The notes below the pieces were generated by a model. The model did not search any database. It was not told where the DNA came from and saw nothing but the letters and a program-made list of their open reading frames with translations. Shown here piece by piece: positions 3,621 to 55,900 of a DNA stretch of 64,000 nt. A program made the translations under genes and the position numbers. This stretch comes from Guillardia theta CCMP2712. Lineage: Eukaryota > Protista > Cryptophyta. The DNA is taken from assembly GCF_000315625.1 (NCBI RefSeq), contig NW_005434660.1:420711-484710 (forward strand), given 5' to 3'. Position 1 is the first letter of the stretch. Each line of letters opens with the position of its first letter.

Positions 3621-3677
3621 CCCCACCCCCACCCACATCTTAGTTTGAAACACCCCATCCCGCGGGTAAGCCGCGCC

Positions 3678-7192: not shown

Positions 7193-7234
<42 letters not shown>

Positions 7235-7369: not shown

Positions 7370-7665
7370 GATTGAACCTGACCCTGCCTCCCCTTGTCAA
7401 CTCTGCGGCATCCGTTACAAGTGACGTTGGAAGGGCTGCAGCACGGCGGTGCACAATGACAGTGAGCCGCAATGCCCGACCGTACTCTCACATGTCGAAC
7501 CTTTGAAGTTTAGTTTGCGTTCAATAAACTCAGACGAACTTCGGAGGTTCAAAATCAATTGAAGACTTTGAGTAACGAAAGTTCACCCTCAGTGATCGGA
7601 CCGACTTACGAACTTGCGGCTTGACCCGTGCCAGTGGCTCAGTCAGCTGAACGTGGCAAGACGGT

Positions 7666-8232
7666 ATGAGCGAAGATTCCGTGATGTTGATAAAAAATGT
7701 CAATTTCTTGACCTTTTTTTTCACACTCAGCTGCTCTTGCGTGTTGAAGAAGCTTTGAGAGAGGGGAGCAACAGCGCAGAGACTGAAAGCGAGGAAGAGG
7801 AAGAGAGGATTGACGACCATTGGCATGTACGCTCTTGCCTACTCCTCGATCCTCAAGTCGAGAAAGAACCCCAGCGAAGTGTCTACTTCCAACAGGAAAG
7901 AAAAGGTCGAAGCCAAGGTCATCAAACAAGAGAAAGTCGTCGAAGAGGCTGCTGTGGAGGAGGAGGAGGACGAAGAGAGAGTATCCGATGCTGCATGCGT
8001 CTTCCTGAAAGAGCGATCGGACTACAGACTTGTGAGGATGGTGCTGGAGGAAGCCGGGCTTGAAAGAGCGCATGCATCGGTGTTTGTGAGGGAGAAGATA
8101 GACGACAGGGCGATAGTGCTGCTCACTAGAGACGACATGCTCGACAGACTTCAACTTCCTTTCGCCGACGTCTTTAGGATCTTCAGTGCACTGGAAGCCC
8201 TCGAGCGCAAGAACAGGCCGTCCAACAAATAA
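7666..8232 (+). CDS. Small SAM-domain protein (5' end uncertain)
   Basis: C-terminal LEEAGLERAHASVFVREKIDDRAIVLLTRDDMLDRLQLPFADVFRIFSAL fits the SAM pattern (L..GL...F....ID...L.LT..D...L.L). Confidence 0.6.
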
Positions 8233-33812: not shown

Positions 33813-35023
33813 ATGATGTTCACATCGGAACGAGTTATTCCGGTTGCCATCGTCGTGTTTGCTATGTTTCTTCAGGCAAGCATTCACAAGATCCATGAAG
33901 GCCACGTCGGAGTCTACTACATTGGTGGAAGGTTGTTGGATGTAATCATTCTAAACAATAACATGGTGGTCTGTGATTAGAGGTGGATGACAGGCGTACA
34001 CGGAAGCTGGATACAATGTCATGTTCCCATTTTTCACACGAGTGCATGAAATGCAAATAACAATTCAGGCAAGATGTATTCGCACATTATTACCCTCGTT
34101 CTGATATCTGTTGTTCCAGACTGACGAAGTCACAAATATTCCTTGTGGAACGCGTGGTGGAGTCATGGTATGTCAAAACAACCAACATCTTTCATGCGTT
34201 TTTTGAATTGATTCTTGACCAAGATAACCTTCGAGAAGGTCGAAGTTGTTAACATCCTCGACAAAAATCGAGTGATACAGACTGTGAGAAATTATGGGAT
34301 CGACTACGACAAAATTTGGATTTTTGACAAGATTCACCATGAAATTAATCAGTTCTGTTCACAGCACACTCTGCAAGACGTCTACATAGAAAAGTTCGAC
34401 ACTGTGGATGATAGAATCAAAGAGGCATTGCAGCGAGACTGCAACACTTATGATACTGGCATAAGAATCATTGCAGTACGCGTTACAAAACCAAAAATCC
34501 CCGAGATTGTTCGACGCAATTACGAGGAGATGGAAGCACAGAAAACTCAATACATGATCGCAGTTGAACATCAGAAGGTAGTAGAGAAGCAAGCAGAAAC
34601 AGAGAGGAGAAGGCTGCAAATCGAAGCTGAGACTGCTGCTTCTGTTGCAAGCATTCGGAAGCAGCAAGAAATTATGGAGCAAGAAGCCGCAAAGAATGTC
34701 TCTCGTATCAAGGATGAGATGCACATCGCAAGGGAAAAGGCTTATGCAGATGCTGAACATTACAAACTGCAACAGGAAGCGATTGCAAATAGTAAGTTGC
34801 TGACTAAAGAGTATTTGGAGGTTGGTTCATTTGTATGTTGATATGTTCAAAGGCTGATGTAGCTTCGGCAGCTCAAACGGGTTCAAGCCATCAGCAATCT
34901 CTCCAAGATATATTTTGGAAATTCGATACCCGCCATGTTCAGGTGATTCTATCCTGTTTCTATTTTCTTTTCCTGAACATTCCTAGTCCATTGGATTTGT
35001 CGAACACAAATAATAAGAAGTAA
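33813..35023 (+). CDS. ERLIN: Erlin (SPFH/band-7 ER lipid raft protein)
   Basis: SIHKIHEGHVGVYYIGG..., IQ/TDEVTNIPCGTRGGVM/ITFEKVEVVN, IFDKIHHEINQFCS.HTLQDVYI, VRVTKPKIPE.VRRNYE.ME, SKIYFGNSIP.MF. Confidence 0.95.
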
Positions 35024-35889
35024 ACCAACGCCTGCCAGGTAGGGGTCAGAGTTAGGAATTCGTTCAACTCTGTGCAATTTAATATCAGCAACAAAAGTGA
35101 TTTTTACACAACAAACATGACAATCTGTGCACAATAATGTCGGCGGCAAGTGTGATTTACATCAGAATATTGATAATGCACGAAGAAAGGCACTTTCCCC
35201 ATGACCTAGAAATCTACACGTCCCTTTTTTACTTGCATTTTCCAATCATTGACGCTTTGAACATGAATTCCCTTGTGCAGTCACACCTTGAATCTCTCTC
35301 GTCTCTCTTCTTTCTCTACCTTCATCGTCCATGATCCTCGAAGGCAGCGACATTGATGATACCCCTTATTTTGTCGGACTTGAGGTGACCGGGTACATTG
35401 ATGTATTTTCAGACTCCCCACCCACCCCACCCCCTGCGACCCTGTGAAGTGCTTCCGAAGTTTCCCGCGCTCCCACATGCCACTCCACATGGCACGCAAA
35501 CCTAAGAGCCTGAGAGCGTCGCCATGCGGCACCTATGAGCTCAGATGCTGATGTGCTCTTCATTGTCATGCCTACCAGCTACTGTTGCCTGCTTACCTCT
35601 GTCGTTCCTGTCGTTTCTCTCGCTCTTTCTCATTGGACCCCCTCCCGTCTCCGTCTCCGTCTCCGTCTCCGTCTCCGTCTCCCCCCTCCCCCTCCCTCCC
35701 TCTTCCTTTGCCTCTCCCTCTCTTTAGCTATCTTTATACCGTCATGTATACGAACCTTTCACGAGCACCGAAAGCGATGTTTCTTACCTTCTTTCAGTCA
35801 ATCAAGTGCTGTTCACCCGTTTTACCTATTAAGCGCGGTGACGGCCTTTGACTCTTGCGCAGGACTCCTTCACAAGTTCGGCTAGTCTG

Positions 35890-38800
35890 ATGGGGGGCTG
35901 TTACACCGGTATAGACGAAAAAACTGGAAAGTTCATAGCAAGAAGACGCACATTCGATAAGGTATGTTCCAAATGTTGACAATTGATCGCCTGAGCTTGT
36001 TTGCTAAGGTTCGAGAGCCATTGTACGAGCTGCAACAGGTTCAAGCATGCTCCAAAGATTTGGCAGGATCTGTGATTGTAAAGCCCCCCACCCGCGCATG
36101 CTGGATTCATTATCTTGGAGAAATGATTCAGCTATGCAATGAGGCTGCAAGGCGCTCGTTAAAAAAGCATCGCCTTGAGACATACAAAGAAATGGATGGA
36201 ATTCAGTCCAAACCCCTTGGATTGGAGTACATGGCCGACAGATTAGATACCGACGACCCTCTTTGGGGCTACCTAGTGCGATCCGAAAAGGAGGGCTTTT
36301 TGCAGGGCTTCATTACAGCAACGACCTTCACGACATGGCATAAAGATTTTGAGTGGAATTCGATAGCACGCGAGGCGAACATAAGTGAAGAAGAAAAGAG
36401 GTAGGAATTTGGTGCTAACTCTCATATTAGGTTGATTGTCTGATGACTCATTGGCTTAGATCGTTCCTCTGGGACTCGTCCAATGAACTTTCAAGCGAGT
36501 TGCAAACTCAGCAGCGCGCAGGCGACCCCAACAACGAAGGCATTATCTGGCCCAGGTATACACTATTTCGAGAAGTTTTGATTTTTTAGTTGAACATAAG
36601 ACTTTACCAGAGTTGCCGAAATATCTCTTTTGGGTGGACTGGGCTGTGGAGGACATTTGCTCACTCTTTTGTTGGAAGATCTTGAAAAGTCTCAAGACTA
36701 CGACTATGTTGTTTTGCAAGCCACTGAAAATGCTATCAAATTCTATGAAAGATTTGGTTTCATCAGAGTTGGTGCAATTGCGAAGCCAGATCAGGAAGCA
36801 ATGGCTCAAAAACTGGCGGAAAAGCAACGAGAAAGAGAATTAAAACAGATTGAGAAGGAAAAGTCACGATTGTTGAAAGAGGCAAAAGTGATAGATATGA
36901 ATTCCAAAGACAACCACGTGATCTCCTTGACCAGTTCAGACGATTTTGTGTGGAGATTTGGATGCTCAAGAGTTCTTCAGGATGTGCTAGAAGGATTAAG
37001 CCACGGTGTTCTTTGGAATGCCACTCCAGTGTGTCCGAAACTTTCCGAGTGGCTATCTTGTCAAAAAGTAAATATTCTGCGCCAGGACGAATTTCAGACA
37101 ATTGATGACTTCATGTTGCATTTGAGAAAAATTATATCGTCCGAGCTTGAAACGCAATCGTCAGACAAAGGCCCTGCTTGTTTGGAACTTGTGGAAGAGC
37201 TAAAGAGTTCTTGGTGTGATTTAGAATCAAACACCTCATCCAATCTCTTCATCTACGTTGACGTTGACTGGGAAAAGAAGCAAGGATTTAAAATATTTCA
37301 ATTGATCTCTGAAGGCAAATTGTTTAAAAGCAAGCGACCTGTTGTGAAAGCAATAGAATGGGTAAAAGTGAAGTCAGCCGATGGAAACCTCAACCAAAAT
37401 GATTGTGAAGTATTGTTCCTGGCTCCAAAAGACATGAAACCTATTGATCTCGTTTGGACTCCTCGTCGAACTTTGGATGGAATTTTGCAATCTGATTTTA
37501 TGCGAATTTCTGATATCGACAACATTTGTCAGAAAGCTAAGAATGTTCAAATCTCTGGCGATTTGAGGCTGAGAATCGAGAGACAAGATAGAATCGTAGG
37601 AATTGCATATGCTAGGTTGAACGCCTTGAAAGGTCTGGAAAAATTGAAGATTGACATTCAGAGAATGATCTCAGACCATGTCGACAATGACAAGGCCCAA
37701 TCGCAGTCATCAGGCGAAAAAAATATTTCCGAAATGTCGGAATACGAAAAAATGCGAAAAAGGAGAATTGATGAAAATCAAAGAATAATGCAGTGCAGCG
37801 GCATTTTGCAGCTCAAACAAAATGTCAGCGAATTTTTTGACAAATCGGACTCTGAGGCACCTGCTTGTAAACGACAGAAATTGACGAATTTCACAGAAAG
37901 CACTGACGGAAATGAGATGACCGTCGAATTTGAAAACGCAGATTTGTCTGATATCGAGACGCCAGTCAAAGAAGCACAAAATGCCAAAAAGACCTATCTC
38001 GTGCAAGAGTTCGAAAGTCTTCAATCCATTGCTCAAAAATTCATGTTAGAAACAGACACCCTGATGGAGGCCAATCGATCTTCCTTCGCTCATGTCAATC
38101 CAGATGAGAAGTTGCCCAATGGTTCTATCATTTTTCTTCCAGATAGAGACCCTTCGAAGTCTGTCCAAGCTTTGAGAGAGGGGTGGTCTGCGTATTGTCA
38201 TTGGACTTATCCTGACCAAGAAGTGGACGACATCCATCCAAGCTATATGATGGCTCTGTAAGCTGCCACCTTTCAAGTTTTCTGAATAATTTTTCTTTGT
38301 TAGGAAATTGGATCGTAAAAAGTCTGTGAAGAATTCGAACATTCGTTCCAGGCTTCGAGACAGCCCTCCAACAAGCATGTTGATTTGTGTTGAATGTGCA
38401 AACCAAGTCTGATCGCTTTACAGGCATATTAGCCAGTTTCAAAAGAGTTCATACTCAGACGTGCATGAGTTCTTTTCGTGCACAAATGCGATGTCAGCCG
38501 CAGAAGTTTGTTCCTCTTTAGGCATCGGTGCAACCGAAATGATGGAGCTGAATCGTTCAGAATTTCCCCAAGTATCTTTAAACTACAAATTTGATGCTGG
38601 CACCGTCTTGAAGATCCCGAAATTCCAAAGTGTCAGCTTGATTTCAGACTGGCAAAAAGATTGCCTTTCAATTGTTCAGAGACTTGAACAGTCAAGATAC
38701 TCAGTATATTTTCAAAGCCCATTGGATTGGAAGGCTTGCGGATTATTTGATTACCCCTTCATCGTTTCAAGACCAATGGATCTTGAAACTGTAAAGACCC

Positions 38801-41800
38801 GACTTCTCCAAAATCGGTATGGTAGTCTTTGGGAGGTTGCCAAGGACATCGACCAAATTGTTGAGAATGCCATTACTTACAATCCAGCAGAAGACCCCGT
38901 TTCCGTTGCAGCAATGAAGCTTTCTGAAACATTCAATGCCCTGTGGAAACAATGCAACTTGCACAAGATTTGTTCCATTCCGGAATTTGATCGGTCAATT
39001 CCAAGAAAGAAGAAGACTTTATTCAACAAAGTCGTGTCGGTTCAAGGGCGTCCAAACCATTACTACTTTGTACTGCATTTCATACCTGATATGGAATGGT
39101 GCCATTTAGCACCTTTGAAAAGATGCAGCTGCTTCCCGAATGTCACGAGAAATGGACATCCACATTTGCATGCGGGACGGCCCCAATGGAAACTTGCGCC
39201 TGAAGCAGAGGGTGGGGAAATAGATGTCGGTGCTGATCGATGCAAGATCGTCAAGGCGATCACAGTCAACAAGACGGCTGACGCGGACAAAGAAGCGTGG
39301 GATATTTTGCAAGTATCCGATAAGCTGAATCAGCCTGATATTCAAACTCCATGGATAAAAGAATGCAAGGCTATGTTGACAAAACTGAGCTCAAGACAGA
39401 AAAAGGAATCAAATCTGGCAGACGATTTGAACAAAAAGAATGAAGAGATCTTGCCAATCGCAGTATATATAGAAGCAATCAATACTAACAAATGTACAAA
39501 TGCGGCAGTGCTGATCTTGAAAATCATGCGGAAACTGAAAGATTTTTCAATGAATTCAAACATGCCAAAGTCTATTCAGGCACTGCAAAAAGACCTATTC
39601 CGCATTATAGAAGAAGCATGTGTCTCCTCTCCGGTGCTGCGGACTGCGTACCAGTTTGCAAACCGCAAGCTCAAGGACGAAGAGTCCCAGGCATCAGGAG
39701 AGAGCTGCGGAAGTGGCGAGGACCAGGCCAGCGAGAAACGCGACGAGCCCGACACGTAAGATGCTTGCTGTGTGCTTGTCGCAGGGAGGGGCTGACAATG
39801 CACGCGCTCACAGGGAGGAGCTTCGGAAGATCCGGGAAGAGCAGGCGTTGCTTGTGAGCGGCCCAGGGCGTACGGTAGTCGGCAAGATCACGGCAGGGCT
39901 GCTGAAGAAAGTCTCTGAGCATCAGAGCGGAAGGATCCTCAAGTTTACCGATCTGATAGTACCAAAAGACCTGGAGAAGCTGATCGAGGTAAGCAACAAA
40001 GCGAGAGCACAGACGTGGCGGCTTGGAGGGAGGTGGGGGGCGAGGGGGGAGGAAGCTGATTGTAGAGGTGGCCAGGCCCTCGCAGAGAACCGGTCGACCG
40101 TGAGGCTAGACCTGGAGGGGTGCGGAGTGGGAGACGTAGGGTGCAGCCTGGTGAGGGAGCTGCTGAAGCGGAACAAGCGGATCTCGGAGATCGACCTGCA
40201 GCTGAACCAGGTAGGGACGCCAAGAGGCAGAGAGAGGAAGGGGTACTGGGGGCAGTCTGACGGGGCTTGTAGGTGACGGACGGCGGGGCGAAGGCGCTTG
40301 CTGAAGCGATACCGGGGTCCGGGCTGAGCGCGGTGTTTCTTGGGAAGAACACGGTGACAGCGACGGGAGTGAAGCTTCTGCTTGAGGCAGCGCTGGAGCA
40401 GCGGAAGCTCACAGGAACGGCTGTGGAGCTATGCGGCATACCAGAGGAGACGATGAGGGCAGTGATGTCAGAGCTGGCGGGAAAGGGGAAGGATCAGCTG
40501 GCTGCGGAAGCACAGGAGGACTGGCAGATGGGCGAGGCGCTGAAGGAGGAGCTGATGGAGTTCGAGCGGACTGAGACTTTGGATGTAGAGGAGGGCTCCA
40601 GGGAGCAGGGGGAAGCGCATGCCGCGCGAGAGGGGGGAGAAGGGGAGAGGTAAGGCTGTCTGGTGTGAGGGAGGTAGGAGAGGAATGACGGAGGTGCAAA
40701 TAGGGGGTGCACTACACGGACGTCACAAGCAGACGACGAGAAGGCAGTATGCTTGCAGGATAGCAGGCAAGAGACCAGCACAGCTACGAAGCTATCGGTG
40801 AATACGGCGACTGTGCCATGCTGGAGGAAAGAAGGCAAGGTGTTGGTCAAGCGCCTGATGAATCTACGTTCCAAGTCGTGGCCTTTCCTTGAGCCTGTAG
40901 ACCCTGTGTCTATGAATGCATATGACTACTTTGAGGTCGTGAAGAGGCCGATGGATCTAGGGACGGTAGACAAGAAGCTGGAGAACAATCAATACTCTAC
41001 TTGCGCGTACTTGCTGTACGACGTGTTGAGCACCTTCAAGAACGCGTGCTTGTACAACCCCCCTGAGAATAAGGTCCATCAGCTGGCTCAGGACATGCTG
41101 AAGATCGTAGAGGAGGCCTGTGTCTCCTCTCCGGTGCTGCGGACTGCGTACCAGTTTGCAAACCGCAAGCTCAAGGACGAAGAGTCCCAGGCATCAGGAG
41201 AGAGCTGCGGAAGTGGCGAGGACCAGGCCAGCGAGAAACGCGACGAGCCCGACACGTAAGATGCTTGCTGTGTGCTTGTCGCGGGGAGGGGCTGACAATG
41301 CACGCGCTCACAGGGAGGAGCTTCGGAAGATCCGGGAAGAGCAGGCGTTGCTTGTGAGCGGCCCAGGGCGTACGGTAGTCGGCAAGATCACGGCAGGGCT
41401 GCTGAAGAAAGTCTCTGAGCATCAGAGCGGAAGGATCCTCAAGTTTACCGATCTGATAGTACCAAAAGACCTGGAGAAGCTGATCGAGGTAAGCAACAAA
41501 GCGAGAGCACAGACGTGGCGGCTTGGAGGGAGGTGGGGGGCGAGGGGGGAGGAAGCTGATTGTAGAGGTGGCCAGGCCCTCGCAGAGAACCGGTCGACCG
41601 TGAGGCTAGACCTGGAGGGGTGCGGAGTGGGAGACGTAGGGTGCAGCCTGGTGAGGGAGCTGCTGAAGCGGAACAAGCGGATCTCGGAGATCGACCTGCA
41701 GCTGAACCAGGTAGGGACGCCAAGAGGCAGAGAGAGGAAGGGGTACTGGGGGCAGTCTGACGGGGCTTGTAGGTGACGGACGGCGGGGCGAAGGCGCTTG

Positions 41801-43948
41801 CTGAAGCGATACCGGGGTCCGGGCTGAGCGCGGTGTTTCTTGGGAAGAACACGGTGACAGCGACGGGAGTGAAGCTTCTGCTTGAGGCAGCGCTGGAGCA
41901 GCGGAAGCTCACAGGAACGGCTGTGGAGCTATGCGGCATACCAGAGGAGACGATGAGGGCAGTGATGTCAGAGCTGGCGGGAAAGGGGAAGGATCAGCTG
42001 GCTGCGGAAGCACAGGAGGACTGGCAGATGGGCGAGGCGCTGAAGGAGGAGCTGATGGAGTTCGAGCGGACTGAGACTTTGGATGTAGAGGAGGGCTCCA
42101 GGGAGCAGGGGGAAGCGCATGCCGCGCGAGAGGGGGGAGAAGGGGAGAGGTAAGGCTGTCTGGTGTGAGGGAGGTAGGAGAGGAATGACGGAGGTGCAAA
42201 TAGGGGGTGCACTACACGGACGTCACAAGCAGACGACGAGAAGGCAGTATGCTTGCAGGATAGCAGGCAAGAGACCAGCACAGCTACGAAGCTATCGGTG
42301 AATACGGCGACTGTGCCATGCTGGAGGAAAGAAGGCAAGGTGTTGGTCAAGCGCCTGATGAATCTACGTTCCAAGTCGTGGCCTTTCCTTGAGCCTGTAG
42401 ACCCTGTGTCTATGAATGCATATGACTACTTTGAGGTCGTGAAGAGGCCGATGGATCTAGGGACGGTAGACAAGAAGCTGGAGAACAATCAATACTCTAC
42501 TTGCGCGTACTTGCTGTACGACGTGTTGAGCACCTTCAAGAACGCGTGCTTGTACAACCCCCCTGAGAATAAGGTCCATCAGCTGGCTCAGGACATGCTG
42601 AAGATCGTAGAGGAGGCCTGTGTCTCCTCTCCGGTGCTGCGGACTGCGTACCAGTTTGCAAACCGCAAGCTCAAGGACGAAGAGTCCCAGGCATCAGGAG
42701 AGAGCTGCGGAAGTGGCGAGGACCAGGCCAGCGAGAAACGCGACGAGCCCGACACGTAAGATGCTTGCTGTGTGCTTGTCGCGGGGAGGGGCTGACAATG
42801 CACGCGCTCACAGGGAGGAGCTTCGGAAGATCCGGGAAGAGCAGGCGTTGCTTGTGAGCGGCCCAGGGCGTACGGTAGTCGGCAAGATCACGGCAGGGCT
42901 GCTGAAGAAAGTCTCTGAGCATCAGAGCGGAAGGATCCTCAAGTTTACCGATCTGATAGTACCAAAAGACCTGGAGAAGCTGATCGAGGTAAGCAACAAA
43001 GCGAGAGCACAGACGTGGCGGCTTGGAGGGAGGTGGGGGGCGAGGGGGGAGGAAGCTGATTGTAGAGGTGGCCAGGCCCTCGCAGAGAACCGGTCGACCG
43101 TGAGGCTAGACCTGGAGGGGTGCGGAGTGGGAGACGTAGGGTGCAGCCTGGTGAGGGAGCTGCTGAAGCGGAACAAGCGGATCTCGGAGATCGACCTGCA
43201 GCTGAACCAGGTAGGGTCGCCAAGAGGCAGAGAGAGGAAGGGGTACTGGGGGCAGTCTGACGGGGCTTGTAGGTGACGGACGGCGGGGCGAAGGCGCTTG
43301 CTGAAGCGATACCGGGGTCCGGGCTGAGCGCGGTGTTTCTTGGGAAGAACACGGTGACAGCGACGGGAGTGAAGCTTCTGCTTGAGGCAGCGCTGGAGCA
43401 GCGGAAGCTCACAGGAACGGCTGTGGAGCTATGCGGCATACCAGAGGAGACGATGAGGGCAGTGATGTCAGAGCTGGCGGGAAAGGGGAAGGATCAGCTG
43501 GCTGCGGAAGCACAGGAGGACTGGCAGATGGGCGAGGCGCTGAAGGAGGAGCTGATGGAGTTCGAGCGGACTGAGACTTTGGATGTAGAGGAGGGCTCCA
43601 AGAAGCAGGGGGAAGCGCATGCCGCGCGAGAGGGGGGAGAAGGGGAGAGGTAAGGCTGTCTGGTGTGAGGGAGGTAGGAGAGGAATGACGGAGGTGCAAA
43701 TAGGGGGTGCACTACACGGACGTCACAAGCAGACGACGAGAAGGCAGTATGCTTGCAGGATAGCAGGCAAGAGACCAGCACAGCTACGAAGCTATCGGTG
43801 AATACGGCGACTGTGCCATGCTGGAGGAAAGAAGACAAGGTGTCTGTTACACAGGCGGCAGAAGGCGTAGAGACGATTTGTTTGTGAATTTTTGAGGGAT
43901 TCTTCTTCCTTGCAGATTCCGGAACGGTTTTTTCTGGAGAGTGTTTAA
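35890..43948 (+). CDS. GNAT acetyltransferase - LysM x2 - bromodomain protein with C-terminal tandem (RI-like LRR + bromodomain) units
   Basis: GNAT: AEISLLGGLGCGGHLL...YDYVVLQATENAIKFYERFGF. LysM-like: TYLVQEFESLQSIAQKF...LMEAN...LPNGSIIFLP (about 37989-38141) and about 38467-38619. Bromodomain at 38647-38952 (DY..IVSRPMDL...NAITYN). Repeated units of LRR (LDLEGCGVGDVG, IDLQLNQVTDGGAKALA) + bromodomain (SWPFLEPVD...DYFEVVKRPMDL...NACLYN). The splice junctions I checked keep frame; the start may lie slightly upstream. Confidence 0.82.
39619..43843 (+). repeat. Near-perfect tandem repeat, period exactly 1500 bp, about 2.8 copies (exons and introns)
   Basis: Lines at +1500 offsets are identical except for about 5 substitutions seen (39783, 43217, 43601, 43603, 43835). 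Confidence 0.97.
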
Positions 43949-43980
43949 ATCTTCTTCCTTTTAGTCAATAAAACACTTAG

Positions 43981-46900
43981 CTAAGGGAGGAGTAATACTC
44001 TCAAGTTTCCAAGCTGAGCAATTTCTGGTGGAATTCGCTTGATTGGATTGCCTGGATAGGATTAAGTCCAGTGAAAACGAAACGGACTCTCATCACCTTT
44101 CAGCCAGAGTTCGCTGAGCTGTATACAACCTCCGATACCGCTGAAGCCCTCTGAATCGCACTAGGTCAGACCGAAAACTAGCCCCTCAGTTTCTACCTGG
44201 TAGGGACGTTATGAGGTTGTTTGAGAGCGTCAGGGTGCGGAGAGCTTTGAGTTTGCCTATCATGGAAGGCAAAACCTGACCGAGCAAGTTGTCATGTCGT
44301 GTGCCAGATGTGAGCTAGTTTACCTCAATCTCATTGTCATGGAGCCAAAGTTCTTGCAGGTTGGTGAGCTGTCAGGAGTAGTGTCAGAGAAAGATAGATC
44401 TTCACCATCATCAGCACCTGGCAGATGCTCATCGGCAGTGAGTTCAACTTGTTGTGATCAAGATTCAATTCAGTCAAAGTCACGCAACGCCCAATGGAGG
44501 ATGGTATGCTTTCTAGCGCGTTGTGGTCAACCCAGATTTGCTTGATGGACGGTAAATTCCCTAGTTGTCATCCCCTTCAGGTCAACAGACACGCAGAATG
44601 CAGGAAGCACCTATGGTGGCAGGGAGTTCTTTCAACTGATTGTTGCTCACAGCTAACTGCGTCAGCGCACGGAAGTTTCCAATCTTGACCGGCAAAGTTT
44701 CAAGAGCGTTGTCGGAGATGGTGAGAACCTGCAATGAAGGCGTTAAAGACTTTTGCGGTAGATCTTGACAAACCTGCAGGGTGGTGAGGTCCTCAATCAG
44801 TGGCGGGAGTTCGTAGAGGCGATTCGCACTGAGAGACAAGATCTGGAGGTTGAACAACATGTTCATGGAAGCTGGAAGGATCGCAAGTTGGTTTTCTCGC
44901 AGTGACAACTGAGTCAAACTCTCGAGCGAACCAATGGAGGGAGGGAGTTTGACTAGAGCATTCTGAATCAAGTTGAACTTCATCAGATTCTTCAGATTGC
45001 CAACCCCCGGAGGTAGAGAGGTGAGGCGATTCGTTTGAAGCTCCAGCTCAGTGATAGACGTGCAACCCCCCAGCCCTTGAGGAAGAGAAGACAGGCGGTT
45101 CTGCGCCAGAGACAAGTGAGTGAGCGCACTAAGTTGCTTGATGGTGTCAGGCAGGGTGACGATCTGATTGTTGGCAAGAACTAACACCTCAAGGGTGTAC
45201 ATCTCACAGACGACCGCGGGAAATTGCGTGAATTCATTGTTGTTCAAGATCAATTGCTTCAAGTAGCGAGTGAGTATCTCACCCTCGAACATCATCGGGG
45301 GGAGAGAAGACAGCATGTTGTGAGCCAGGTTCATCGACTTGATGAGAGCGAGCTCTGCTATCCTCTTGTTCGCTTCTGTGAGTGTGTTGTGCTCGAAGTT
45401 CAACTCGGTCAAGTTGCTCATCTCAGCGATATGTGACGGGATGCCGACGATCTCGTTCTTGCTCACGTTGAGGGTTCGCAATGAGATGAGGGCAGTCATC
45501 TTTGGGTCCAGGTTCCTCAGCTGATTCCCGGACAGGTCGAGGGAAGTCAGGTACGTCATGTACTCGATCTCCATAGGAAAGCTCTCCAACCCAAGGTTCG
45601 GCATGTCCAGACTGCGGGTCACCCGAGCTTGCAACAGGCAGTGGAAGAAGCTTATAATCGCCTTGGTGCCCAGCGCGACGGTTTCGATAGGAGGCGAAGT
45701 TGTGTGATTGTCTGTGACATCTAGAGTCTCTAGGTTCGTCAGTTTGCCTACAGTCAGCGGGAGGATCGTGAGCTTGTTGCGGTAGAGGAGCAGCTTCTTG
45801 AGCGCCGTCAAGTTCCCAATAGTGCCAGGCAGCGCCTCGAGGTTGTTCACAGCGAGATCGAGATGAGCGAGCGAAGTCAACTCTCCTATGGAGTCTGGCA
45901 GCTTGAGCAGCCGGTTGTTGTTCATGTTGAGGGATGTGATGCAGGTGAAGAGATTGATCCTCTGCGGCAGCGACTGCATCTGATTGTTGGAGAAGTCGAT
46001 ACTGAGCAGATCAGGAAATGCCGCGGCGTCACGAGGAAAGTTAATCATTCCCAAGTCAGCCAGAGCCAATGTATGGTCGGACCTTGCTTCCAAGAACCCA
46101 CGGAAGTAATGCAGAGTTGACTCTGATCCCTTGGCAATCACTTCGTAAGGTGGGGCCTTGCAAGCTTTGTTCTCTGCCAATGCAAACTGTTTGATGTTGG
46201 GCAGCTTGCCAATCTCTATGGGCACCTGGGTGATTTTGTTTCTGGTGAGCTTGCAATCCACAAGTTGCGTACACCGACATAGGTTTCTAGGAACTGTTGT
46301 CAACTGATTTTCAGATGCATCAAGAATTTTCAGTTTGAGCAAACGACCGATGGACGATGGGATAGCCTGTATCTGATTGTGATGCGTTCTAAACTCTTCC
46401 AGGTTGTCAAGATCGCCGATCTCATTGGGGAGACTGGGCAAGCGATTCTTTCCGACGTTGAGGTAAGTGAGCGACGTCAAATTCTGAATCTCAGAAGGCA
46501 GATCATTCAATCTGTTATTCTCAGCGTCTAAGTAGGACAGGCTGACCAGATTGACGAACAAGTTGTCGGGAAACTTAGGGATGTTCTCATTCTCGTTGAA
46601 TTTGAGTATGCGCAACCGAGTCAGGTAGATCAACGTGTTGGGCAACTCTGACAGCTCGTTGTGTGAGAGATCCAAAGATGTCAACAACGTGCAAAGACCA
46701 ATAGCTGAATCCAATTGCGAGATCAGATTCTGGGAAAAATTGATTTCCTCCAGCTGAATGTTGGCTCCAATATTCTCAGGAATTCTTCGGATTCTGTTTT
46801 CACTGATATCCAGTTTCCTTGCTCCATACGGCCCCTGGTCCCCGTTGGGATTTGGAGGTCGGTCAACCAACAGCTCGATGTCGATAGGATACGTTCCAAT

Positions 46901-49900
46901 ATCCTTCTTGTTGTAGATGAACTCATGTTTGCTCCGAGATTGAAGAACATGCGAGCAGAAGTCTATGATAGCCTGCGTTCCTTTGGTCCAAACGTCCCTT
47001 GGCGGCGCTTGTATCGGGTTCCCGGTCACATTCAATTCCCTCAAGCTCTTCTTCAAGTGACCAACTTCGATAGGAATTCTCTTCAGCTTATTGCTCGACA
47101 GCGTTAACGTGTTGAGGCGAGTTGACTTCCAGATGGTATTCGGTATCTCTTGCAACTGATTTCCATCCAGGTACACCAATTCCAGAGAAACGCAATCAAA
47201 GATTTCATCGGGCAGTACTGAAATTTCACAATCGTTTGCTATAATCTTTTTCAATTTCATCAGCTTACCGATAGTCCTTGGGAAAGATCTCAAAGCATTG
47301 TTCTGTACTTCTATCTCCACGACAGATTCCCATTCACCGATCGTTATAGGCAATTCTCTCAGCGAATTCTCGTCAGCCTTGAAGCGATTAATCTTGGTCC
47401 AATTTCCAATCTCACCAGGTAGATACTGCAGTTCATTCTCGCTGATGTCAACTGTAATAAGCTCAACTAAATTTCCAATCTCTTTCGGCAGTTGGACAAG
47501 CACGTTGTCTTGAAGTTTTAACTTTGTTACTGAAGTCAGTAGACCGATGTCCGGCGGGATGGTTCGCATTTCATTGGAAGCCAGGGTAAGGTCTACCAGC
47601 ATCGTCAGGGTACATATTTCACGTGGAAAGAACGCCAGGCCCATCTCACGCAAGTCGAGTCTCTTATACAGCTCTGCTTCCTTGAGAGTCCTCATGTACA
47701 CCATTATCGACTGCGTACCCTCCGAAACGATTTCTGGCGGCGGAGTCTCTAGTTTGTTTCCTGTCACATTGATCACATTGAGGTTGTCACACTGGCACAG
47801 GGCCAGCGGGAGATATTCTATTTGATTGTATTGCACAGACAGCACCTCCAACGCATCCAGTTTTCCGAGCTCCTCCGGCAGATCTTTCAGTTCGTTCTGG
47901 TCGAAGACAAGTTGCTTCAGGTTGTTCAGCTGCTCGATTTCAGGAGGAATCTGCTGAATCTCGTTGTCCACCATCTTGAGTCGTGTGAGATTAGTAAGGA
48001 GGAAAACCTCCACAGGAATGTGTTTCAGTCCCATCTTATCAAGGACAAGATTTCCCGTTTGACGGGCGGCATGCACTCTCTTGATGTAGTTGAGAACAAC
48101 TCCTTCACCACTCATCGTGATGGCTCTCGGAGGAATTCGCAAGCTCTCCACCTCATCCATGATAAACCGCAACTTGGTCAAGACCGTCAGATCGTATACC
48201 TCGATCGATAGCTTCTTGACCTGCGTCAACCTCATCATGCCCTGCGGGAGTGACACCAACGGGTTGGAGGTGCACATCAGCTCAGTCAGACTTGAAAGTT
48301 TGTACAGCTCGAAGGGTAGCAATTCTATCTGATTGTGCGACAGCCATAATTGTTTCAGAAATCCGAAGGATGAAATCTCCTCTGGGATCGATTCCAACTT
48401 GTTGTAAGATAATTTCAAGACTTCAAGAGCGGTGAGTCGCGTGAAGCCATTGGGCAATCTCGTCAACAAGTTGTCACAGAGGTTCAGGCTGATCAAACTT
48501 TCGAGGTGACCAAATCGGTTAGGAAGCTCGTGCAATTCATTATGTAGCAGTTTCAGACGCGTAAGCCTCGTCATTTCATACACTTCTTCGATCAGATATG
48601 TCAGCGACAGCCCTGTAAGGTCAAGGGCATCATCTATCCAGGCCTGTGAAATTCCATTCAAAAATGCCTTCATAGCTGCTGTGCCTTTCAAAACCACTGG
48701 TGGCGGAGGAACAGCGAGCTCGGCGTTGTCATCAACTTCAAGCTTGTCCAGGCTTTTCATCCGTCCCACTGACCAAGGAATCTTCTGCAAACTGTTTCCT
48801 ATCACGCTCAATTCTTCCAGCCAATTCATTTCCCCAATTTCGTCAGGTAGATCTTCAATCAGATTGTCGATAAGCGACAACTTGGTCAGATTGGTAAGTT
48901 TTGCGATCTCCTTGGGGATATGGCGCAACTTGTTGTGATCCAACTTCAATTCTCGTAATTGCCACATTTCCGAGACTGCTGGAGGCAGAATAAGCAGTCG
49001 ATTTTCAGAGGCATTCAGTTCTGTCAGTTGTGTCATTTGTCTGATTGCCAGGGGCAACATTTTGAGCAAATTGTCAGACACATTCAACTTTGTTAGACCA
49101 GGAACTTGGCAGATTTCAAGCGGGATCTGCTGCAGCGCCATCTTGCTCAAATCGATCTCTCGTGTCGACCTGCCTTGAAACATTTCCTTGAGGTATTCGA
49201 CGATGGCAGCTGCGCCTTCTCGAACGATTTCAGCTGGGGGGTTTCGCAAACTTTGATTTTCCGAGTCAACATGCACCATCTGCAGACTTGTGACACATCC
49301 CAGCTCAGCAGGCAGCTGGCGCAATTCGTTTCCAGTGATAGTGAGCTCTTTCAGCCTTGTGAGCTGTGACACAGAGCCTGGCAGCTCGACAAGATAGTTG
49401 TTTGACAGGCTCAGGTGCGTCAAATTGGTCATATTTCCCACTTCCTTTCTCAAGTTGGGAAGTCCGTTCTCATGCAGGACAAGGGTTTCCAACATATCAA
49501 GCTCACAGACCTCTATGGGAACTGTGACCAACTCTTGCCGAGTCAAATCAAGGTATTTGGTCTTGCGCGCTTCAACAATCCTCAACAGATATTGTACTAT
49601 TCCATAAGTTCCCTTGCTGGCAATCTGTGGAGGCGGAGTTTCAAGTTGGGGGTTGTTGTCGATGTAAAGAGCGTGCAAGCGAGTGAGTAGTCCAACTTCA
49701 ACAGGAATCCTTTGCAAGCGATTATGGCTGAGCAACATCTTTTCGAGGTTCGCAAGATTTCCAATCTCCACTGGCAGTGTTGTCAGTTGATTCCAGGCCA
49801 AGTGGAGCTCTTTTAAGGAAGTCAAAGTGCCAATTTGTTTCGGCAGCTCCTCTATTCTGTTTCCAACAAGCTTGAGCACTTCAATCTGCGTGAAAGCTTC

Positions 49901-52900
49901 GATGACAACAGGCATACTTGTCAATCGATTGTCCGACAACCACAGCTCTTTCAATTTTTCGCATCTTCCAATATTTGCAGGAAGACTATTGATCTGATTT
50001 TTTTCCGCCTTTAATGTCACCAGATTTGCTAATAGACCAATCTCAGGCGGAAACGTTTTTAGCTTGTTCTGAGACAATTTCAAAGCTGTGAGAGAGGTCA
50101 TTTGCCCAAGTTCAGGGCCAAGTACCTCGATATCATTGTCTACCAATGACATCGTGGTGACATTGATCAAGAAACGAACTTCTTTAGGAATTTCTGTAAT
50201 CTTGTTGTTCCAAAGCTGAAGTTCTTGCAAAGAAGGGATGGTTGTAATGATGGCAGGTATGGAAAACAAGCCCATACCACTCAAGTCAAGTCGCCTCGTT
50301 TCGCTTGCCTTGTGTATACTTCGGAGAAATCTCAAGGTTGCAGATGTGCCTAATTCCCAAACCTCTTTCGGGGGAGATTTGAGGTCATTTGTATCGAAGA
50401 TCAGCTCCTGTAAATCTGGAATGTCACCAAGCTGCCAAGGAAGACTTTGTAAGGGATTTCCCTGAAGACGAAAGATATTCAAGCTCTTCATTTGTCCAAT
50501 CTCACCAGCGATAGAGTATATCTTGTTGTCTTTCAAAGACAACAACTGAAGGTTACATAGCTTTGCTATCACCGGCGGCATCACTGTGAAGAGATTCTTG
50601 TCCAAAACGAGCTCGCGCAAACTTGTCAGCAATGCAATCTCCCCGGGTAAAGCGTTCAATTCATTCTGAGCAATCCACAAAACCGAGAGTGAAACCAAAT
50701 TCCCAATGAATGACGGTATGGAAGTGAGCAAATTCCAGCTGAGTGAAAGATGTTCTAGGTACCGAAGCTCTCCTATTTCAGGAGGCACAAGGGTAAGTCC
50801 AAATCCTTCCAGACTGAGCTTTTTGTCGAACCGGGAATGATATATGTTCTTCAGGTAGCCCATGATCGCGGGTGTACCCTTGTTGAGGACCTCTTCTGGG
50901 GGGGTTCTGAGATCATCCATGTCCATTTTCAGCTGTTGCAGGTTTTCAAGGAGCCCGAACTCAGCTGGGAGTGCGACAATTCGATTGCCTGCTGCACTCA
51001 ATTCCGTCAGACTTGCAAGCTTTCCTATTTCTGGTGGGAAATTCATCAACCTATTCTTGTCTAATCGTAAATAAGTCAAACTTGTCACATCAGTAACTTC
51101 TTTGGGCAGGTACGTCAAACCATAATTTGATATATCCAGGACGCCTGTCGACCTGGCATCGTAACATCGTTTCATGTACCTGATGCAGTGCATCGTTCCT
51201 TTCTCAAACACAACACGTGGAGGGGAGACCAGGTCTTTGTTGTGGTCTAACATCAAAGCCTCAAGTTGAGATAGTTTGCCCAGCTCCATTGGAATTCGTT
51301 CAAGAGAATTGTTCTGCAACGTAAGTTCTATCAGATTCTCCAGGTCCCCGATCTCCTTTGGCACAGTCTTCAACAAGTTGAATGGCAGCTTCAATTGAGT
51401 GAGAGAAGTCATTGAGCCCATTTCTGTCGGCAGACTTTCAAGTTGGTTGTTCGACAGTCTCAGGTCCTTGCAGCTCACCAGTTGACCCATAACAGGTGGG
51501 AGCTGCATCAAGTTGTTCTTGTGCAACCACAACTTCTTCAAGTGAACCAGCTTGCCAAATTCAGGGATCAAATGAGTGATACTGTTGTTATCCGCTTTCA
51601 AAGATTCCAACTTTGTCATTTGCCCTATGACCGGAGTCAACTTTGTGAAATCATTGTATGAAATTCTCAATTTCCGCAAGTTCAAAAGCTTTCCCATTTC
51701 TGGGGGCAGCACAGATATCTTGTTATCAATCACTGACAGAGAAGTCAATTTGAGCAGACCTCCAATCGCCGATGGTAAGTTTGTTAAGTTATTCTTGAAC
51801 AACTTCAGTTGAGTCAGATTCGTCATTCGCACAACCTCAATCGGGACAAAAGTCAACCCATTGCAGCTCAAATCCAATTTTGCTGTCCATTTGGCTCTAT
51901 TGAATTTCCTCAAATAATCCAAGATCACCACAGCCCCCTTATCCACCACCTCTCGAGGGGGAACCTCAAGGGAATCATTGTGACTGGCATCAACAAATTC
52001 TAACTTGGTCAGCCAACACATGTCTGAAGGTAATGCTTCTATCTTGTTGTATGCTATGCTGATTTTTTTCAGGTTGTAAAGCTCCAATGCAGGACGTGGA
52101 AATTCCTCGAAGACATTGTTATCAATATCCAATTCTTCTAAGTTTTGCAAGCGAGCAAATTCGGAAGGAAGGCTGTCAAGTTGATTGGCAGTCAAGTACA
52201 AGTATTTGAGACTTGTCAAAGTAGCTAACAGGGGGGGAATTTCTGTAATGTGATTCTCAACCAGGGATAAGCTGGTCAAATCAGTCAGCAAGAAAACAGA
52301 ATATGGAACGCTGCGAAGTAAATAGCCGTCGAGGTTCAAAATATTGCTCCTCTCTGCTTTTCCAATTTTATCTAGATAGACCACTATCTCTTGTGTGTTC
52401 TGTTCTGCGAGCATCAAAATCTCTGACGGTGGATCTTTCAATTCATTTCCATCGAGCGTGAGAGTTACCAACTTCGTCAGATTTCCCATTGAGGAAGGAA
52501 GAAATGTTAAAAGGTTGCGGTCAAGGTGAAGGGCAGTGAGGTTGGTAAATGAGCCAATTACAGCATCAACCTCCGCAAGGAGATTGTCATTCAGTGATAA
52601 TCCAGTTATGTACTGCATGTCAAGGATTTCAGGTGGCAGAAACGACAACTTCATATTATCCATGAACAAAAGCTGGGTCGTTCTTGCCTCCAAAATCCTT
52701 CCCAGGTACTCGATGATCACGTCACAACCTTGATCAAGAATCAACTTCGGTGGTTTCTCCCACGGGTTCGACTCAAGCGCAAGGTCGGTCAGGTTGGTAA
52801 GTCTTCCCATTTCGGGTGGAAGAACTTCGACCTCATTGTGATCGATGAGAATCTGAGATAGATGAGTAGCATTTCCAATCTCATGCGAAATCTTGCATAT

Positions 52901-55900
52901 GGTATTGTAAGAACATTGCAAGGTTGTCAGACTAGACAGACTGCCGACACCAAGTGGAATTGCGGTCAACGAGTTGTGAGATAAGATCAAAGATCTCAAA
53001 GATCTCATGTTGTGCACTGCAGGAATCAAAATTAAACTATTGAACTCAAGATTCAAATACTCCAGAGCTGTCATGTTCATCAAGGACATGGGCAAATTCT
53101 GCAAATTGTTATGGTCTATTTGTAAAATTCTGAGGTTGATTAGTTCTCCAAACTGATTCGGCAGGGACTGTATCATGTTCATGTCTGCTCGCAGCTCAGT
53201 CAGCGATGACAAATGTACGAGCTTGTCGGGGAGGATCTCAATGTTGTTACGGGATATGATGAGCGAGGCTAGATGCTGAAGTTGCCCCAACTCATCTGGC
53301 AAGTCCTTCAAGATGTTATCTGACAAGGCCAACGACGTCAAGGCAGTAACTTTGCTTATCGTTGGCGGCAAATGTTTCAGATTGTTGTTGAACAATTTCA
53401 TTTCGGACACATCGGGCAGGATCGTTGAAATCAAGGGAAAATTGGGATTTCCCATGCTGCTCAAATCAAGACAGTTGTTGTAGCGAGCGTTATGAACATT
53501 TCTGAGAAATCGGAGTATCTGGTCAATGCCTTGTTCAATGACCTCCCGTGGCGGTATTTTCAAGATCTCTTCATCGATTGCCAACTGCTTCAGGTTGGTC
53601 AGCAAACCCATTTCATAAGGCAACATCTGAATGTTGTTCTCCCGGAGGGATAAGAATTCTAGATTTGTCAAGTTTCCGATCTCAGGCAATATCGTTTCAA
53701 TCCCATTTTCATCCAGATCTAAGGACTTCAATGAAGAATAATATTGAATGGTTGACGGTATTGTATTCAACTTGTTTTTCCTCAACGAGATATGAGTCAA
53801 ATTCGTCAAACTCGATGAATCTGCGGGCAGAGATCTTAGCTGATTGCCGTCCAGCAGTATGCTGGATATTCTTGTTATTTGTGTCACCTCATTTGGCAAG
53901 AATGTGAGACCGAAATTTCTAAGATCTAACATCCCCGAATCGTGCGCTTTAAGAAGGGAGCGCAAGTATGCGATGATAACTGTCGGGCCTTGCGCAATCA
54001 CGTCATGCGGAGGGGAGCTGATATCGTGGTTCCCGTCCAGGTTCAACTCTTCCAGTTTTTCCAACAACCCAAGTTCAATGGGCAAACTGGTCAATTCATT
54101 GTAGGATATACTGAAAGACGAAAGATTAGAAAGCTTTCCTATGCTTTTTGGCAAGGTTCTTAGATTGTTGTCAACAAAAGACAATTCTGTCAAATTGCAC
54201 AAGTTAGAAATCTTCTCTTGCACTTCCGTTAGTTGATTGTCGGTGAGTGACAGTCTGGTCAACGATGTAAGATTCAAAACTTCTGGAGGAATACGTTCAA
54301 GACTGAGGCCCATCAAATCCAACGACTTGGTATTCCTTGACTGAAATACTCTTGTAAGATAATCCAAAACCAATTTCGAGCCTTGCTTTATAATATCTGC
54401 TGGAGGTGATTGAATATCGTTGCCGTCAATCAACAGCATTGCAAGACTATTAATGTTTCCCAGTTCCACAGGAAGTACCTTAATCTTGTTATCTGTTAAA
54501 GATAACTCTGATAGATTTGTCAATTGGCCAATCTCAGAGGGCATAAAGCCGATGGCATTCCCTGCAATTCTGAATCGGTTGAGAGTTGTCAGATTTCCAA
54601 TCCCAGGAGTAAGGAATTGGATTTGGTTGTAAGAGAGGTGAAGTTCTGTCAATGAAGTAAGAGACTCAATCTGTTCTGGGAAAAGCTGAAGTTTATTGTA
54701 TGACAAGTTCAGCACTGCCAAGTTAGTCAAGGCTGATATGGACTCAGGAATCATGGAAAGCTGGTTTGAATACAGTTCAAGAACTTGAAGACTTGTCATG
54801 AGCCCAAGGAAACTCGGTGCCTGCTCCATTTGGTTGTTATCAGCCTTGAGATGTTCCAAGTAGATCAAGCTACAGATAGAATTAGGTAATTCACGGATTG
54901 AATTGCCAGAAATATCAAGAAACACCAACTTTGTCAACTGATCAATTTTGGTCGGAACCTCTGTCAAGTTGTTTCTAGCCAGTGAAAGATTGGTAATGTT
55001 GGTCAGAGCAAAAATTTCGGCAGGTACCGATGGGAGTCCCATGCTGCTCATATCCAGATATCCTTCCTTACGACGCATGCTGTCAAGCATTCTTTTCAGA
55101 TAGTCCAAGACTGCAGAGGAGCCCTCAACCTGGATTTCTTTTGGAGGCGAAACCAATTCAGGATTATTCTGGAATGCCAAATTCTCGAGAGTGCTTGCCA
55201 GTAACCCGAGTTGAGGCGGCAAAGCTTTCATCTTGTTGTTTGTGACCGAAAGCTTTGCAAGTGAAGTCAAGTTTCCAATAGTTTGGGGTAGCATTGTTAA
55301 ATTGTTGTTGTCGAGAAGAAGCTTGTTCAAATGAGACAGGTTGCCAAGGCCATTTGGCAAACTTTCGATTCTGTTGTTATGCAACCATAGCTCGTTGAGA
55401 TTGACCATCTTTCCAATGTCTTCAGGTAAACTTCTTAACTTATTCCCTGTCAAAGAGATTTCAGACAAAGAATGCATTTCCAGCACATGTTCAGGAAGTT
55501 CCTTCAGCCCCATGTAGCTCAAATCCAGCTTGTGAGTCATTTCAGACATATCAATCCTCTTCAAGTATTTGAGAATCATTGGTATGCCTCGAAGATTCAC
55601 TTCAGGGGGGGGGATCTTGATGTTTCGGAATTCATCGATTTGTATGTCTGTCAATGTGGTGATGTTTCCTAATGCTGGTTCAAGCTCCGTGATTGGATTG
55701 TTGTCTAGAATCAAACTGGTTAAGTTTGTCAAGTTTCCAATCATTTTGGGCAAAGTCGAAATCTTATTGAATCTCAGATCCAAACACGTTAGATCGGTAT
55801 ACTCCTTGCAAATGTCAAATGGAATCTCTACCAGTTCTAGGTGGGTAAGATCAAAAACTTTCGTCTCGATGCCATTCAAAATTCGTCTCATGTAGGAAAG

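Follow-up and report, generated by a model that had tools for sequence, protein, structure and literature searches.

How does one algal gene come to combine an acetyltransferase with LysM domains, bromodomains and leucine-rich repeats (LRRs), and what could its product do? The question is raised by a gene on the forward (+) strand of the cryptophyte Guillardia theta CCMP2712, within a 64,000-nucleotide (nt) stretch of contig NW_005434660.1 (assembly GCF_000315625.1, positions 420,711 to 484,710), here called the window, whose numbering is used throughout. The evidence presented below makes it likely that this nuclear gene encodes a multidomain acetyltransferase of ~2,293 amino acids (aa), the front of which belongs to an algal GNAT family and the tail of which is a recently amplified array of LRRs and bromodomains.

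Gene Structure and Domain Organization

The gene spans positions 35890-43887 (+) and consists of 18 exons, with a coding sequence of 6,882 nt including the stop codon, corresponding to 2,293 aa. The exon model was read from the three forward frames together with the DNA, and domain searches were made exon by exon. GT..AG borders are present at every exon junction, the frame is kept throughout, the exons are stop-free, and the terminal TGA (43885-43887) is followed, 3' of the last exon, by an AATAAA at ~43967. The order of domains is GNAT core, an insert of ~400 aa, LysM, the last GNAT strands (YCHWTY..PSYMMA), a second LysM, a BET-like bromodomain, a small beta-barrel, and an LRR-bromo-LRR-bromo-LRR tail. 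An earlier interpretation made from the letters alone (the sequence-only reading) had proposed one spliceable gene with these domains in this order, joining a GNAT writer to acetyl-lysine readers, with the YN motif in three bromodomains and a WPF shelf in the repeated ones. The in-frame model bears this out: all the named domains occur together, in the proposed order and on the + strand, the bromodomains being recognized by Pfam and the GNAT, LysM and LRR parts by family homology, family profiles, the fold of a homologue and language-model neighbours; YN and WPF were confirmed by reading. The exons and the domains that they encode are as follows.

35890-35961, +, exon 0: start ATG, the first in-frame ATG downstream of a stop, and the motif GGCYTG.D..TGK..RRR.FD
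36009-36400, +, exon 1: family N-region (LCNEAA, KPLGLEYMADRLDTDDPLWGY) and first GNAT strands
36460-36555, +, exon 2: GNAT loop GDPNNEGIIWP
36611-38257, +, exon 3: GNAT core, insert, LysM 1 and last GNAT strands
36611-36785, +, GNAT part of exon 3: beta4, acetyl-CoA motif A (AEISLLGGLGCG), beta5 (YVVLQAT), alpha4 (FYERFGF) and beta6
36786-37985, +, insert: ~400 aa within the GNAT fold, common to the cryptophyte paralogues and relatives
37986-38141, +, LysM 1: Pfam LysM3_LYK4_5, E 5.6e-4; 16.4 bits with a homologue-only profile
38193-38257, +, YCHWTY...PSYMMA: last GNAT strands, after the insert
38304-38378, +, micro-exon (KLDRKK...): GT..AG on both sides and in frame, without RNA support
38424-39755, +, exon 4: last exon before the first repeat intron, with an open frame along its whole length up to its donor site
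38452-38619, +, LysM 2: 12.5 bits with a homologue-only profile, the weakest domain call
38623-38979, +, bromodomain 1: PF00439, 51 bits versus a cut-off of 21.7; YN kept, without WPF
38995-39339, +, family C-domain (NKVV..HYYFVLHFIPDMEWCHLAPL..GRPQW..ADKEAWDI): predicted small SH3-like beta-barrel (AlphaFold2 model of the window's own segment, predicted local distance difference test [pLDDT] 89.8)
39340-39607, +, spacer: possibly a decayed bromodomain
39814-39988, 40076-40210, 40273-40649 and 40731-41255, and the same at +1500 and +3000, +, repeat-unit exons: four per unit, three units
39814-40649 (the first three of these exons), and the same at +1500 and +3000, +, LRR block: 4-5 repeats of ribonuclease inhibitor (RI) type and an acidic linker
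40650-40730, and the same at +1500 and +3000, +, predicted intron 4 of the unit: 81 nt, GT..AG, read from the sequence
40731-41255, +, bromodomain 2 exon: PF00439, 62.4 bits; WPF and YN kept
42231-42755, +, bromodomain 3 exon: PF00439, 62.4 bits; WPF and YN kept
43731-43887, +, last exon: shortened start of the third repeat bromodomain, then the TGA stop

The junctions at the front of the gene agree with those of related proteins. The exon 0 motif and the junction of exons 0 and 1 are kept in a G. theta paralogue, C81 (80% identity), and in an environmental relative, P0019; exon 1 is 52-63% identical to GNAT family members and collinear with them in the profile alignment A4; the split codons at the exon 2 junctions both encode R, in agreement with the family motif WPRVAE; and the micro-exon restores the family motif PSYMMA-x-KL-x-[RK][RK], with two synonymous and no non-synonymous changes relative to the metagenomic relative described below. 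The N-terminal MGGC is doubtful as a myristoylation signal: P0019 starts with MTTGGCYTG, so the conserved element is GGCYTG rather than Gly2. In DNA run X4, one A is missing (position 37717, exon 3) from the A7 run at 37716-37722; as the omission falls within this homopolymer and the frame is kept both in the window and in the metagenomic contig L007, it is probably a read error.

The repeat is expressed. Spliced RNA contigs from runs X1 and X2 demonstrate introns 39756-39813, 39989-40075 and 40211-40272, and the joint between repeat copies is also found in RNA. Run X1 additionally covers 36677-36961 and 39246-39402, at a depth of 3-5 there versus 16 over the three-copy repeat, the depth per copy being similar upstream and in the repeat. 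The predicted intron 40650-40730, which has a TAA stop at its bases 2-4 (40651), must be removed because the bromodomain would otherwise be out of frame.

The Front of the Protein Belongs to an Unnamed Algal GNAT Family

Up to ~39340, the gene encodes a member of a GNAT family that is large, as yet unnamed, and represented in cryptophytes, stramenopiles and a chlorarachniophyte. A word search yielded 14 proteins with which exons 1-4 are collinear, including those of Amphora, Chrysophaeum, Triparma and metagenomes, and in profile A4, exons 1-3 align collinearly with 50-67% identity to the first row (BLAST E 1e-58 to 1e-20). When the N-region and GNAT profile was searched against 1.84 billion representatives, 878 clusters were retrieved at E<=0.001, of which 369 also reached E<=1e-30; members with a named source belong to Hanusia (H. 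phi), Bigelowiella natans, Amphora, Chrysophaeum and Triparma. The window carries both signatures of the family, namely, LCNEAA; KPL.LEY..DR.D.DDPL.GY; AEISLLGGLGCG; YVVLQAT.....FYE..GF.RVGA, and Y.HWT[FY] ... PSYMMA.KL (38193-38257 plus the micro-exon) followed by NKVV..Y.FVL.Y.PD..WC.L.P...GRP.W...AD.E.WDI (38995-39339). A limited full-text search of the literature did not find a description of this family.

Family members share a layout of N-terminal helical region, GNAT core, variable insert, Y.HWT[FY]...PSYMMA, linker, and a C-terminal barrel that is SH3-like and reminiscent of KOW/Tudor domains. Minimal members have an insert of 35-50 aa, most others one of 150-400 aa, and the C-domain, present in 109 of the ~190 retrieved proteins, forms the protein C-terminus in ~70 of 97. 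Among 104 members scanned with Pfam at E<=1e-4, we repeatedly identified modules that bind DNA or chromatin, namely, HMG boxes in 24, bromodomains in nine, chromodomains in three and Myb in one, together with LysM in 16 (best 3.3e-9) and LRRs in none. The LRR-bromodomain tail was likewise not found in other family members or in the genomes searched. In P0131 of Bigelowiella natans (2,178 aa), the beta5 motif of the GNAT core is separated from the HWT strand by ~1,700 aa, in which two HMG boxes and one LysM were recognized; if the gene model is right, this is an extreme insertion into a GNAT fold.

Two paralogues bear on the origin of the tail. C81 (168000-177999, ~3020-7940) comprises the GGCYTG start, GNAT, insert, LysM, YxHWT, LysM, bromodomain and C-domain, and ends without an LRR-bromodomain tail. 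C9 (20000-33151, - strand), the orthologue of Hanusia phi P0016, has a WPF bromodomain after the C-domain, split over four small exons, and the repeat bromodomain has its closest relative here (61-71% exon identity). Because C9 has a WPF bromodomain in this position, the comparison suggests that a terminal bromodomain was already present in ancestral cryptophytes, the LRR being what was added. Since LRRs are missing from all 104 scanned relatives, they appear to have been acquired recently in this lineage and to stand outside the family mechanism.

The Tail Is a Tandem Array of Nearly Identical Units

The LRR-bromo-LRR-bromo-LRR tail is encoded by a near-identical tandem repeat, a point absent from the sequence-only reading. 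The array extends over 39608-43845 (+) with a period of exactly 1,500 base pairs (bp) and comprises 2.83 copies that are >99% identical; after splicing, a unit measures 1,212 nt and encodes 404 aa. It was detected by a direct repeat search and a self-comparison shifted by 1,500 bp, whereas Tandem Repeats Finder (longest period 500) missed it. Contigs of DNA run X4 contain all three joints of the array (entry, copy to copy, and exit), and contig depth is 29.6 in the repeat versus 8.5 outside, ~3.5 times that of the flank. Thus, the array is real, and it may contain slightly more copies than were assembled. The region 40001-44000 has a GC content of 0.58-0.60, a GC skew of +0.32 and an AT skew of +0.2, and the front of the gene has a GC content of 0.42-0.45; coding of purine-rich Glu/Gly/Lys linkers is the likely cause of the composition of the repeat.

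No other genomic copies of the repeat DNA or the LRR exon were found in the genome searched (87.1 Mb, 669 contigs), and their only database match is a 96%-identical relative. Copying of the repeat or of the LRR exon from elsewhere is therefore unsupported. The history of the array is illuminated by two metagenome contigs from another study, L006 and L007, with ~95% identity to the window. Over its whole length, L007 aligns to 36778-39865, and it thereby extends across the 39608 junction, the intron that follows and the first of the LRR exons, with indels of 9 and 3 nt. L006 matches 42127-44187 and includes a bromodomain, an LRR block, the shortened last unit and the 3' flank; its repeat period is 1,498, and its overlapping copies (1-209 versus 1499-1707) are only 92% alike, compared with >99% in the window genome. 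Because the copies within L006 are this divergent, the array predates the split between the window genome and its relative, and the near-identity of the copies in the former reflects recent homogenisation or expansion. Homogenisation thus differs between close lineages.

Purifying Selection Acts on the Domains

Comparison of the window with this relative showed that exons are 1.5-2.9% diverged and introns 5-8%, and that indels are multiples of three. The last exon (43731-43887) is 15% diverged, and the stop of the relative lies 20 codons earlier. Synonymous and non-synonymous changes are distributed as follows.

Repeat bromodomain exon: 11 synonymous, 4 non-synonymous, none in the fold core
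LRR exons: 2:1, 2:0 and 1:7 (synonymous:non-synonymous), six of the seven lying in the linker after the repeats
LysM 1 and last GNAT strands (37977-38255): 9:2
LysM 2: 4:2
Bromodomain 1: 6:1
C-domain: 3:2
Exon 3 insert: 26:31, fast evolving
Spacer before the repeat: 5:12, nearly neutral

Substitutions in the domains are mostly synonymous, which is the mark of purifying selection. For the repeat bromodomain exon, this selection (11:4) implies translation in the predicted frame.

A GNAT Fold Closest to N-Terminal Acetyltransferases

Motif A, the beta4 Glu and the Tyr of FYE occur in the window and hardly vary across the family; nearly invariant in the family, too, are the Y, H, W, S and M of YCHWTY...PSYMMA. 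The fold was modelled on a Triparma homologue, P0014 (residues 1-412, 64-row alignment; pLDDT 86.7, predicted template-modelling score 0.85). In this model, the GNAT sheet is complete, and two beta-alpha-alpha-beta domains are inserted between beta6 and the HWTF/SYMMAR strands. Whole GNAT chains align with Z scores of 10.5-12.2 over model residues 30-405, spanning both LysM inserts. No recognized domain was found by the Pfam scan in the exon 3 insert (36786-37985) of the window.

The best fold matches of the homologue model are Ard1/Naa10, RimI, Naa50, Naa30 and Naa60. In Foldseek, the top ranks are taken by N-terminal acetyltransferases, ArsN and PaiA, with Naa60 as the top enzyme match (1.9e-4) and GCN5 at rank 43 (E 3.4e-3). 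The Protein Data Bank sequence-profile search placed PaiA and Naa30 first and contained no match to GCN5. The modelled enzyme thus resembles N-terminal acetyltransferases more than GCN5, in line with the sequence-only reading, which had considered the GNAT segment unlike GCN5.

The LysM Pair

Assignment of the LysM domains relies mainly on the family. A family LysM profile that includes the window segments matches solved LysM structures (Ecp6, 3e-6; YaaH, 1e-5; MltD, 3e-3), and a Foldseek search with the modelled pair of the homologue retrieved the LysM structures CHIP13, NlpC/P60 and MltD. With single sequences, the Protein Data Bank search matched LysM 1 to LysM chains only at E 0.5-1.5 and LysM 2 only to spurious designed repeats; LysM 2 had no match in the Pfam scan, and its language-model neighbours, all of them LysM, at 0.83, offer a lead only. 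Judged from these comparisons, LysM 1 is a moderately supported assignment and LysM 2 a weak one. The usual ligand-contact motif GDT(L) reads ESL in LysM 1 and AMS in LysM 2. In the homologue model, the pair sits between beta6 and the last GNAT strands; LysM 2 of the window lies after the GNAT fold, not within it. The recurrence of LysM in the family (16 of 104 members at E<=1e-4) accords with the proposal of the sequence-only reading that LysM occurs here in an intracellular, chromatin-linked protein.

Bromodomains, C-Domain and LRR Blocks

All three bromodomains keep the YN motif, read directly as AITYNP and CLYNPP. The closest solved chains are those of the second bromodomain (BD2) of BRD2/BRD4 for bromodomain 1 (~1e-13) and of the first (BD1) of BRD2/3/4 for the repeat bromodomains (~2e-18). 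The best fold matches of the C-domain are Spt5/NusG KOW (Z 7.2-7.7), followed at ~6.5 by chromo-barrel, Tudor and PWWP domains, MRG15 and SGF29 among them, and Foldseek gave no match at E<=1e-3; as only generic SH3-like barrels were met, at Z<8, the domain is assigned to none of Tudor, chromo and KOW. A fourth bromodomain in the spacer at 39340-39607 is not supported by its sequence (E 3.4 versus the repeat bromodomain). A decayed copy is nevertheless possible there, because the first helix resembles the repeat copies by eye and paralogue C9 has its WPF bromodomain in that place.

The LRRs are 28-29 residues long, and by eye the period can be followed through all three exons of the block. The neighbours by language model belong to LRR_6 (0.96-0.97, with at least 170 features shared), and the best solved match of the block is the LRR of NOD2 (9e-4). 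Neither NACHT nor NB-ARC gave a Pfam match in any exon or open frame of 35890-43948.

Comparison with Known Systems

Like GCN5/PCAF, the window protein joins a GNAT catalytic domain and a bromodomain, writer and reader, in one chain. Unlike GCN5/PCAF, it combines a GNAT of a different kind with a family-specific N-region, domains inside the GNAT fold, a C-terminal SH3-like barrel, three bromodomains, LysM domains and LRRs. The N-terminal acetyltransferase subunits (Ard1/Naa10, RimI, Naa50, Naa30 and Naa60/NatF) provide the closest solved folds over 136-165 residues of the homologue model, but are only 12-20% identical to it, measure ~150-240 aa and lack inserts, bromodomain, HMG and LysM. The likeness to the BET proteins BRD2/3/4 is confined to the bromodomains, the repeat copies with WPF and YN being BD1-like and bromodomain 1 BD2-like; unlike in BET proteins, the bromodomains are separated by LRR blocks and joined to an enzyme, and no exon has a Pfam match to the ET domain.

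LysM domains are known from cell-wall enzymes of bacteria, effectors of fungi (Ecp6) and receptor kinases of plants (CHIP13, LYK); the family LysM profile matches Ecp6, YaaH and MltD, and the modelled homologue pair matches CHIP13 and NlpC/P60. In contrast to those proteins, the window protein has no signal peptide or membrane segment, its partner domains are of the chromatin type, the contact motif has diverged, and, in the homologue model, the LysM pair is inserted in an enzyme fold. Intracellular eukaryotic LysM proteins exist, for example LysMD and NCOA7/OXR1, and the family LysM profile search also retrieved one such protein, the kinetoplastid mitoribosomal uS10m. With RNH1 and NLRs such as NOD2, the tail appears to share RI-type, LRR_6-type repeats of 28-29 residues; unlike in those proteins, there are only 4-5 repeats per block and no NACHT/NB-ARC, and the blocks alternate with bromodomains.

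Genomic Surroundings

Directly upstream of the start codon, at 35638-35722, lies a CCGTCT/CCCTCT hexamer microsatellite of ~14 copies, and the neighbouring upstream open reading frame (34215-34841, +) appears, by eye, to encode a protein of the SPFH/erlin type. Downstream, an uninterrupted open reading frame of 5,949 aa (44582-62431, -) consists of short leucine-rich repeats that are not of the RI type; it is arranged tail to tail with the acetyltransferase gene, ~700 bp from the stop.

Proposed Function and Alternative Explanations

In the most likely reading, the product would be a chromatin-tethered protein acetyltransferase, acting in the nucleus. Its bromodomains would bind already acetylated histone tails and retain the enzyme there, resulting in read-write reinforcement. 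In N-terminal acetyltransferases, the loop between beta6 and the last strands lines the acceptor site; because the inserted modules of the family adjoin this acceptor-binding loop, they could select or gate the substrate. The tail, with its RI-type LRR blocks alternating with BET-like bromodomains, arose by recent tandem duplication or homogenisation of the 1.5-kb unit and would contribute multivalent reading of acetyl-lysine as well as a surface for protein docking.

Several observations weigh against this reading. At the level of individual profiles, which the sequence-only reading had proposed as a check, the bromodomains pass Pfam, but the window's GNAT fragment of exon 3 scores 21.2 bits versus a cut-off of 23.6 (PF13673), LysM 1 scores 15.5 versus 20.9 (PF01476), and LRR_6 (PF13516) scores 16.8 versus 23.4, on a 45-aa exon; the collinear relatives P0050, P0008 and P0001 pass Pfam GNAT with 34.3, 31.7 and 26.6 bits, respectively. 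Moreover, the model behind the GNAT and LysM folds is that of homologue P0014 rather than of the window protein, and the nearest structures, being N-terminal acetyltransferases, do not point to lysine specificity. At the transcript level, no RNA record bridging 39607/39608, where the unique part meets the repeat, was seen in the RNA runs examined, and RNA run X2 covers the repeat only, leaving the upstream part uncovered. No splice joint of the predicted intron 40650-40730 was seen in the RNA contigs; an X2 contig extends 40 nt into it and resumes 10 nt before its end. Retention of this intron would shorten the protein to 1,434 aa, which would include the first LRR block but neither of the WPF bromodomains.

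These transcript data form the case for two products, in which the GNAT-LysM-bromodomain and LRR-bromodomain parts would be separate, the latter with an internal start, or the main isoform would end at the TAA of the retained 40650-40730, the full fusion protein being rare or absent. We consider this unlikely, since the frame is open from 38424 to the donor at 39755 and is kept by the relative with an in-frame 3-nt indel; RNA over 39246-39402 continues past the usual C-terminus of the family; X1 depth per copy is similar upstream and in the repeat; and the bromodomain exon 3' of the doubtful intron is under purifying selection. It is highly implausible that the repeat was created by the assembly, through collapse or mis-joining of a duplicate and without a true tandem array in the gene: although copies of >99% identity with an exact 1,500-bp period are hard to assemble and the copy number of 2.83 is non-integer, all three joints are present in the X4 contigs at raised depth, the copy-to-copy joint recurs in RNA contigs, and the independent metagenome contig of the relative spans 1.15 periods and the exit joint.

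Other alternatives accept the gene and concern the role of the enzyme. It might acetylate protein N-termini, for example those of histones, or a non-protein amine, with the chromatin modules only positioning it. The ranking of Ard1/Naa10, RimI, Naa50, Naa30 and Naa60 among the folds, of PaiA and Naa30 in the profile search, and of GCN5 far lower in Foldseek speaks for this possibility, which we regard as tentative and, on balance, rather unlikely. The Z values are tied within 1-2 units across many GNAT classes, and the fold therefore does not reveal the substrate; furthermore, bromodomain, HMG and chromodomain partners, as known from GCN5/PCAF and p300, suit lysine-acetylation circuits. The sequence-only reading favoured a switch, in which either the LysM (through oligomers of N-acetylglucosamine [GlcNAc], or O-GlcNAc) or the LRR, as an NLR-like sensor, would bind a ligand and turn the acetyltransferase on. 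The recurrence of LysM pairs in the acceptor-lining loop across the family and the strong constraint on LysM 1 (nine synonymous to two non-synonymous changes) are compatible with such a switch, but the sensor part finds no footing in units of only 4-5 RI-type repeats, devoid of NACHT/NB-ARC and without counterpart in the other scanned family members; the window LysM copies lack the usual GDT(L) motif, and the second one falls outside the GNAT fold. We hold a ligand-operated switch to be quite improbable. Hardly more probable is the related view that, in hundreds of algal chromatin acetyltransferases, the LysM pair next to the acceptor site reads an N-acetylated ligand inside the cell; candidates, put forward with equal reserve, would be GlcNAc oligomers, muropeptides from prey or from turnover of the plastid envelope, and O-GlcNAc.

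Biological Implications

The family to which the front of the chromatin-tethered acetyltransferase proposed here belongs represents a large set of putative chromatin acetyltransferases across algae with secondary plastids, with the peculiarities of accessory domains inside the GNAT fold and a C-terminal barrel of its own. The recurrence of LysM in such enzymes provides a concrete, testable case for an intracellular LysM function. Should the LysM pair indeed read an intracellular ligand, a sugar signal would be coupled directly to chromatin acetylation, and an expanding scaffold of LRRs and bromodomains would relay the output further in this cryptophyte. The locus itself provides a view of domain accretion under way: a conserved gene has acquired a 1.5-kb LRR-bromodomain unit, which is maintained by purifying selection and has been recently amplified or homogenised.

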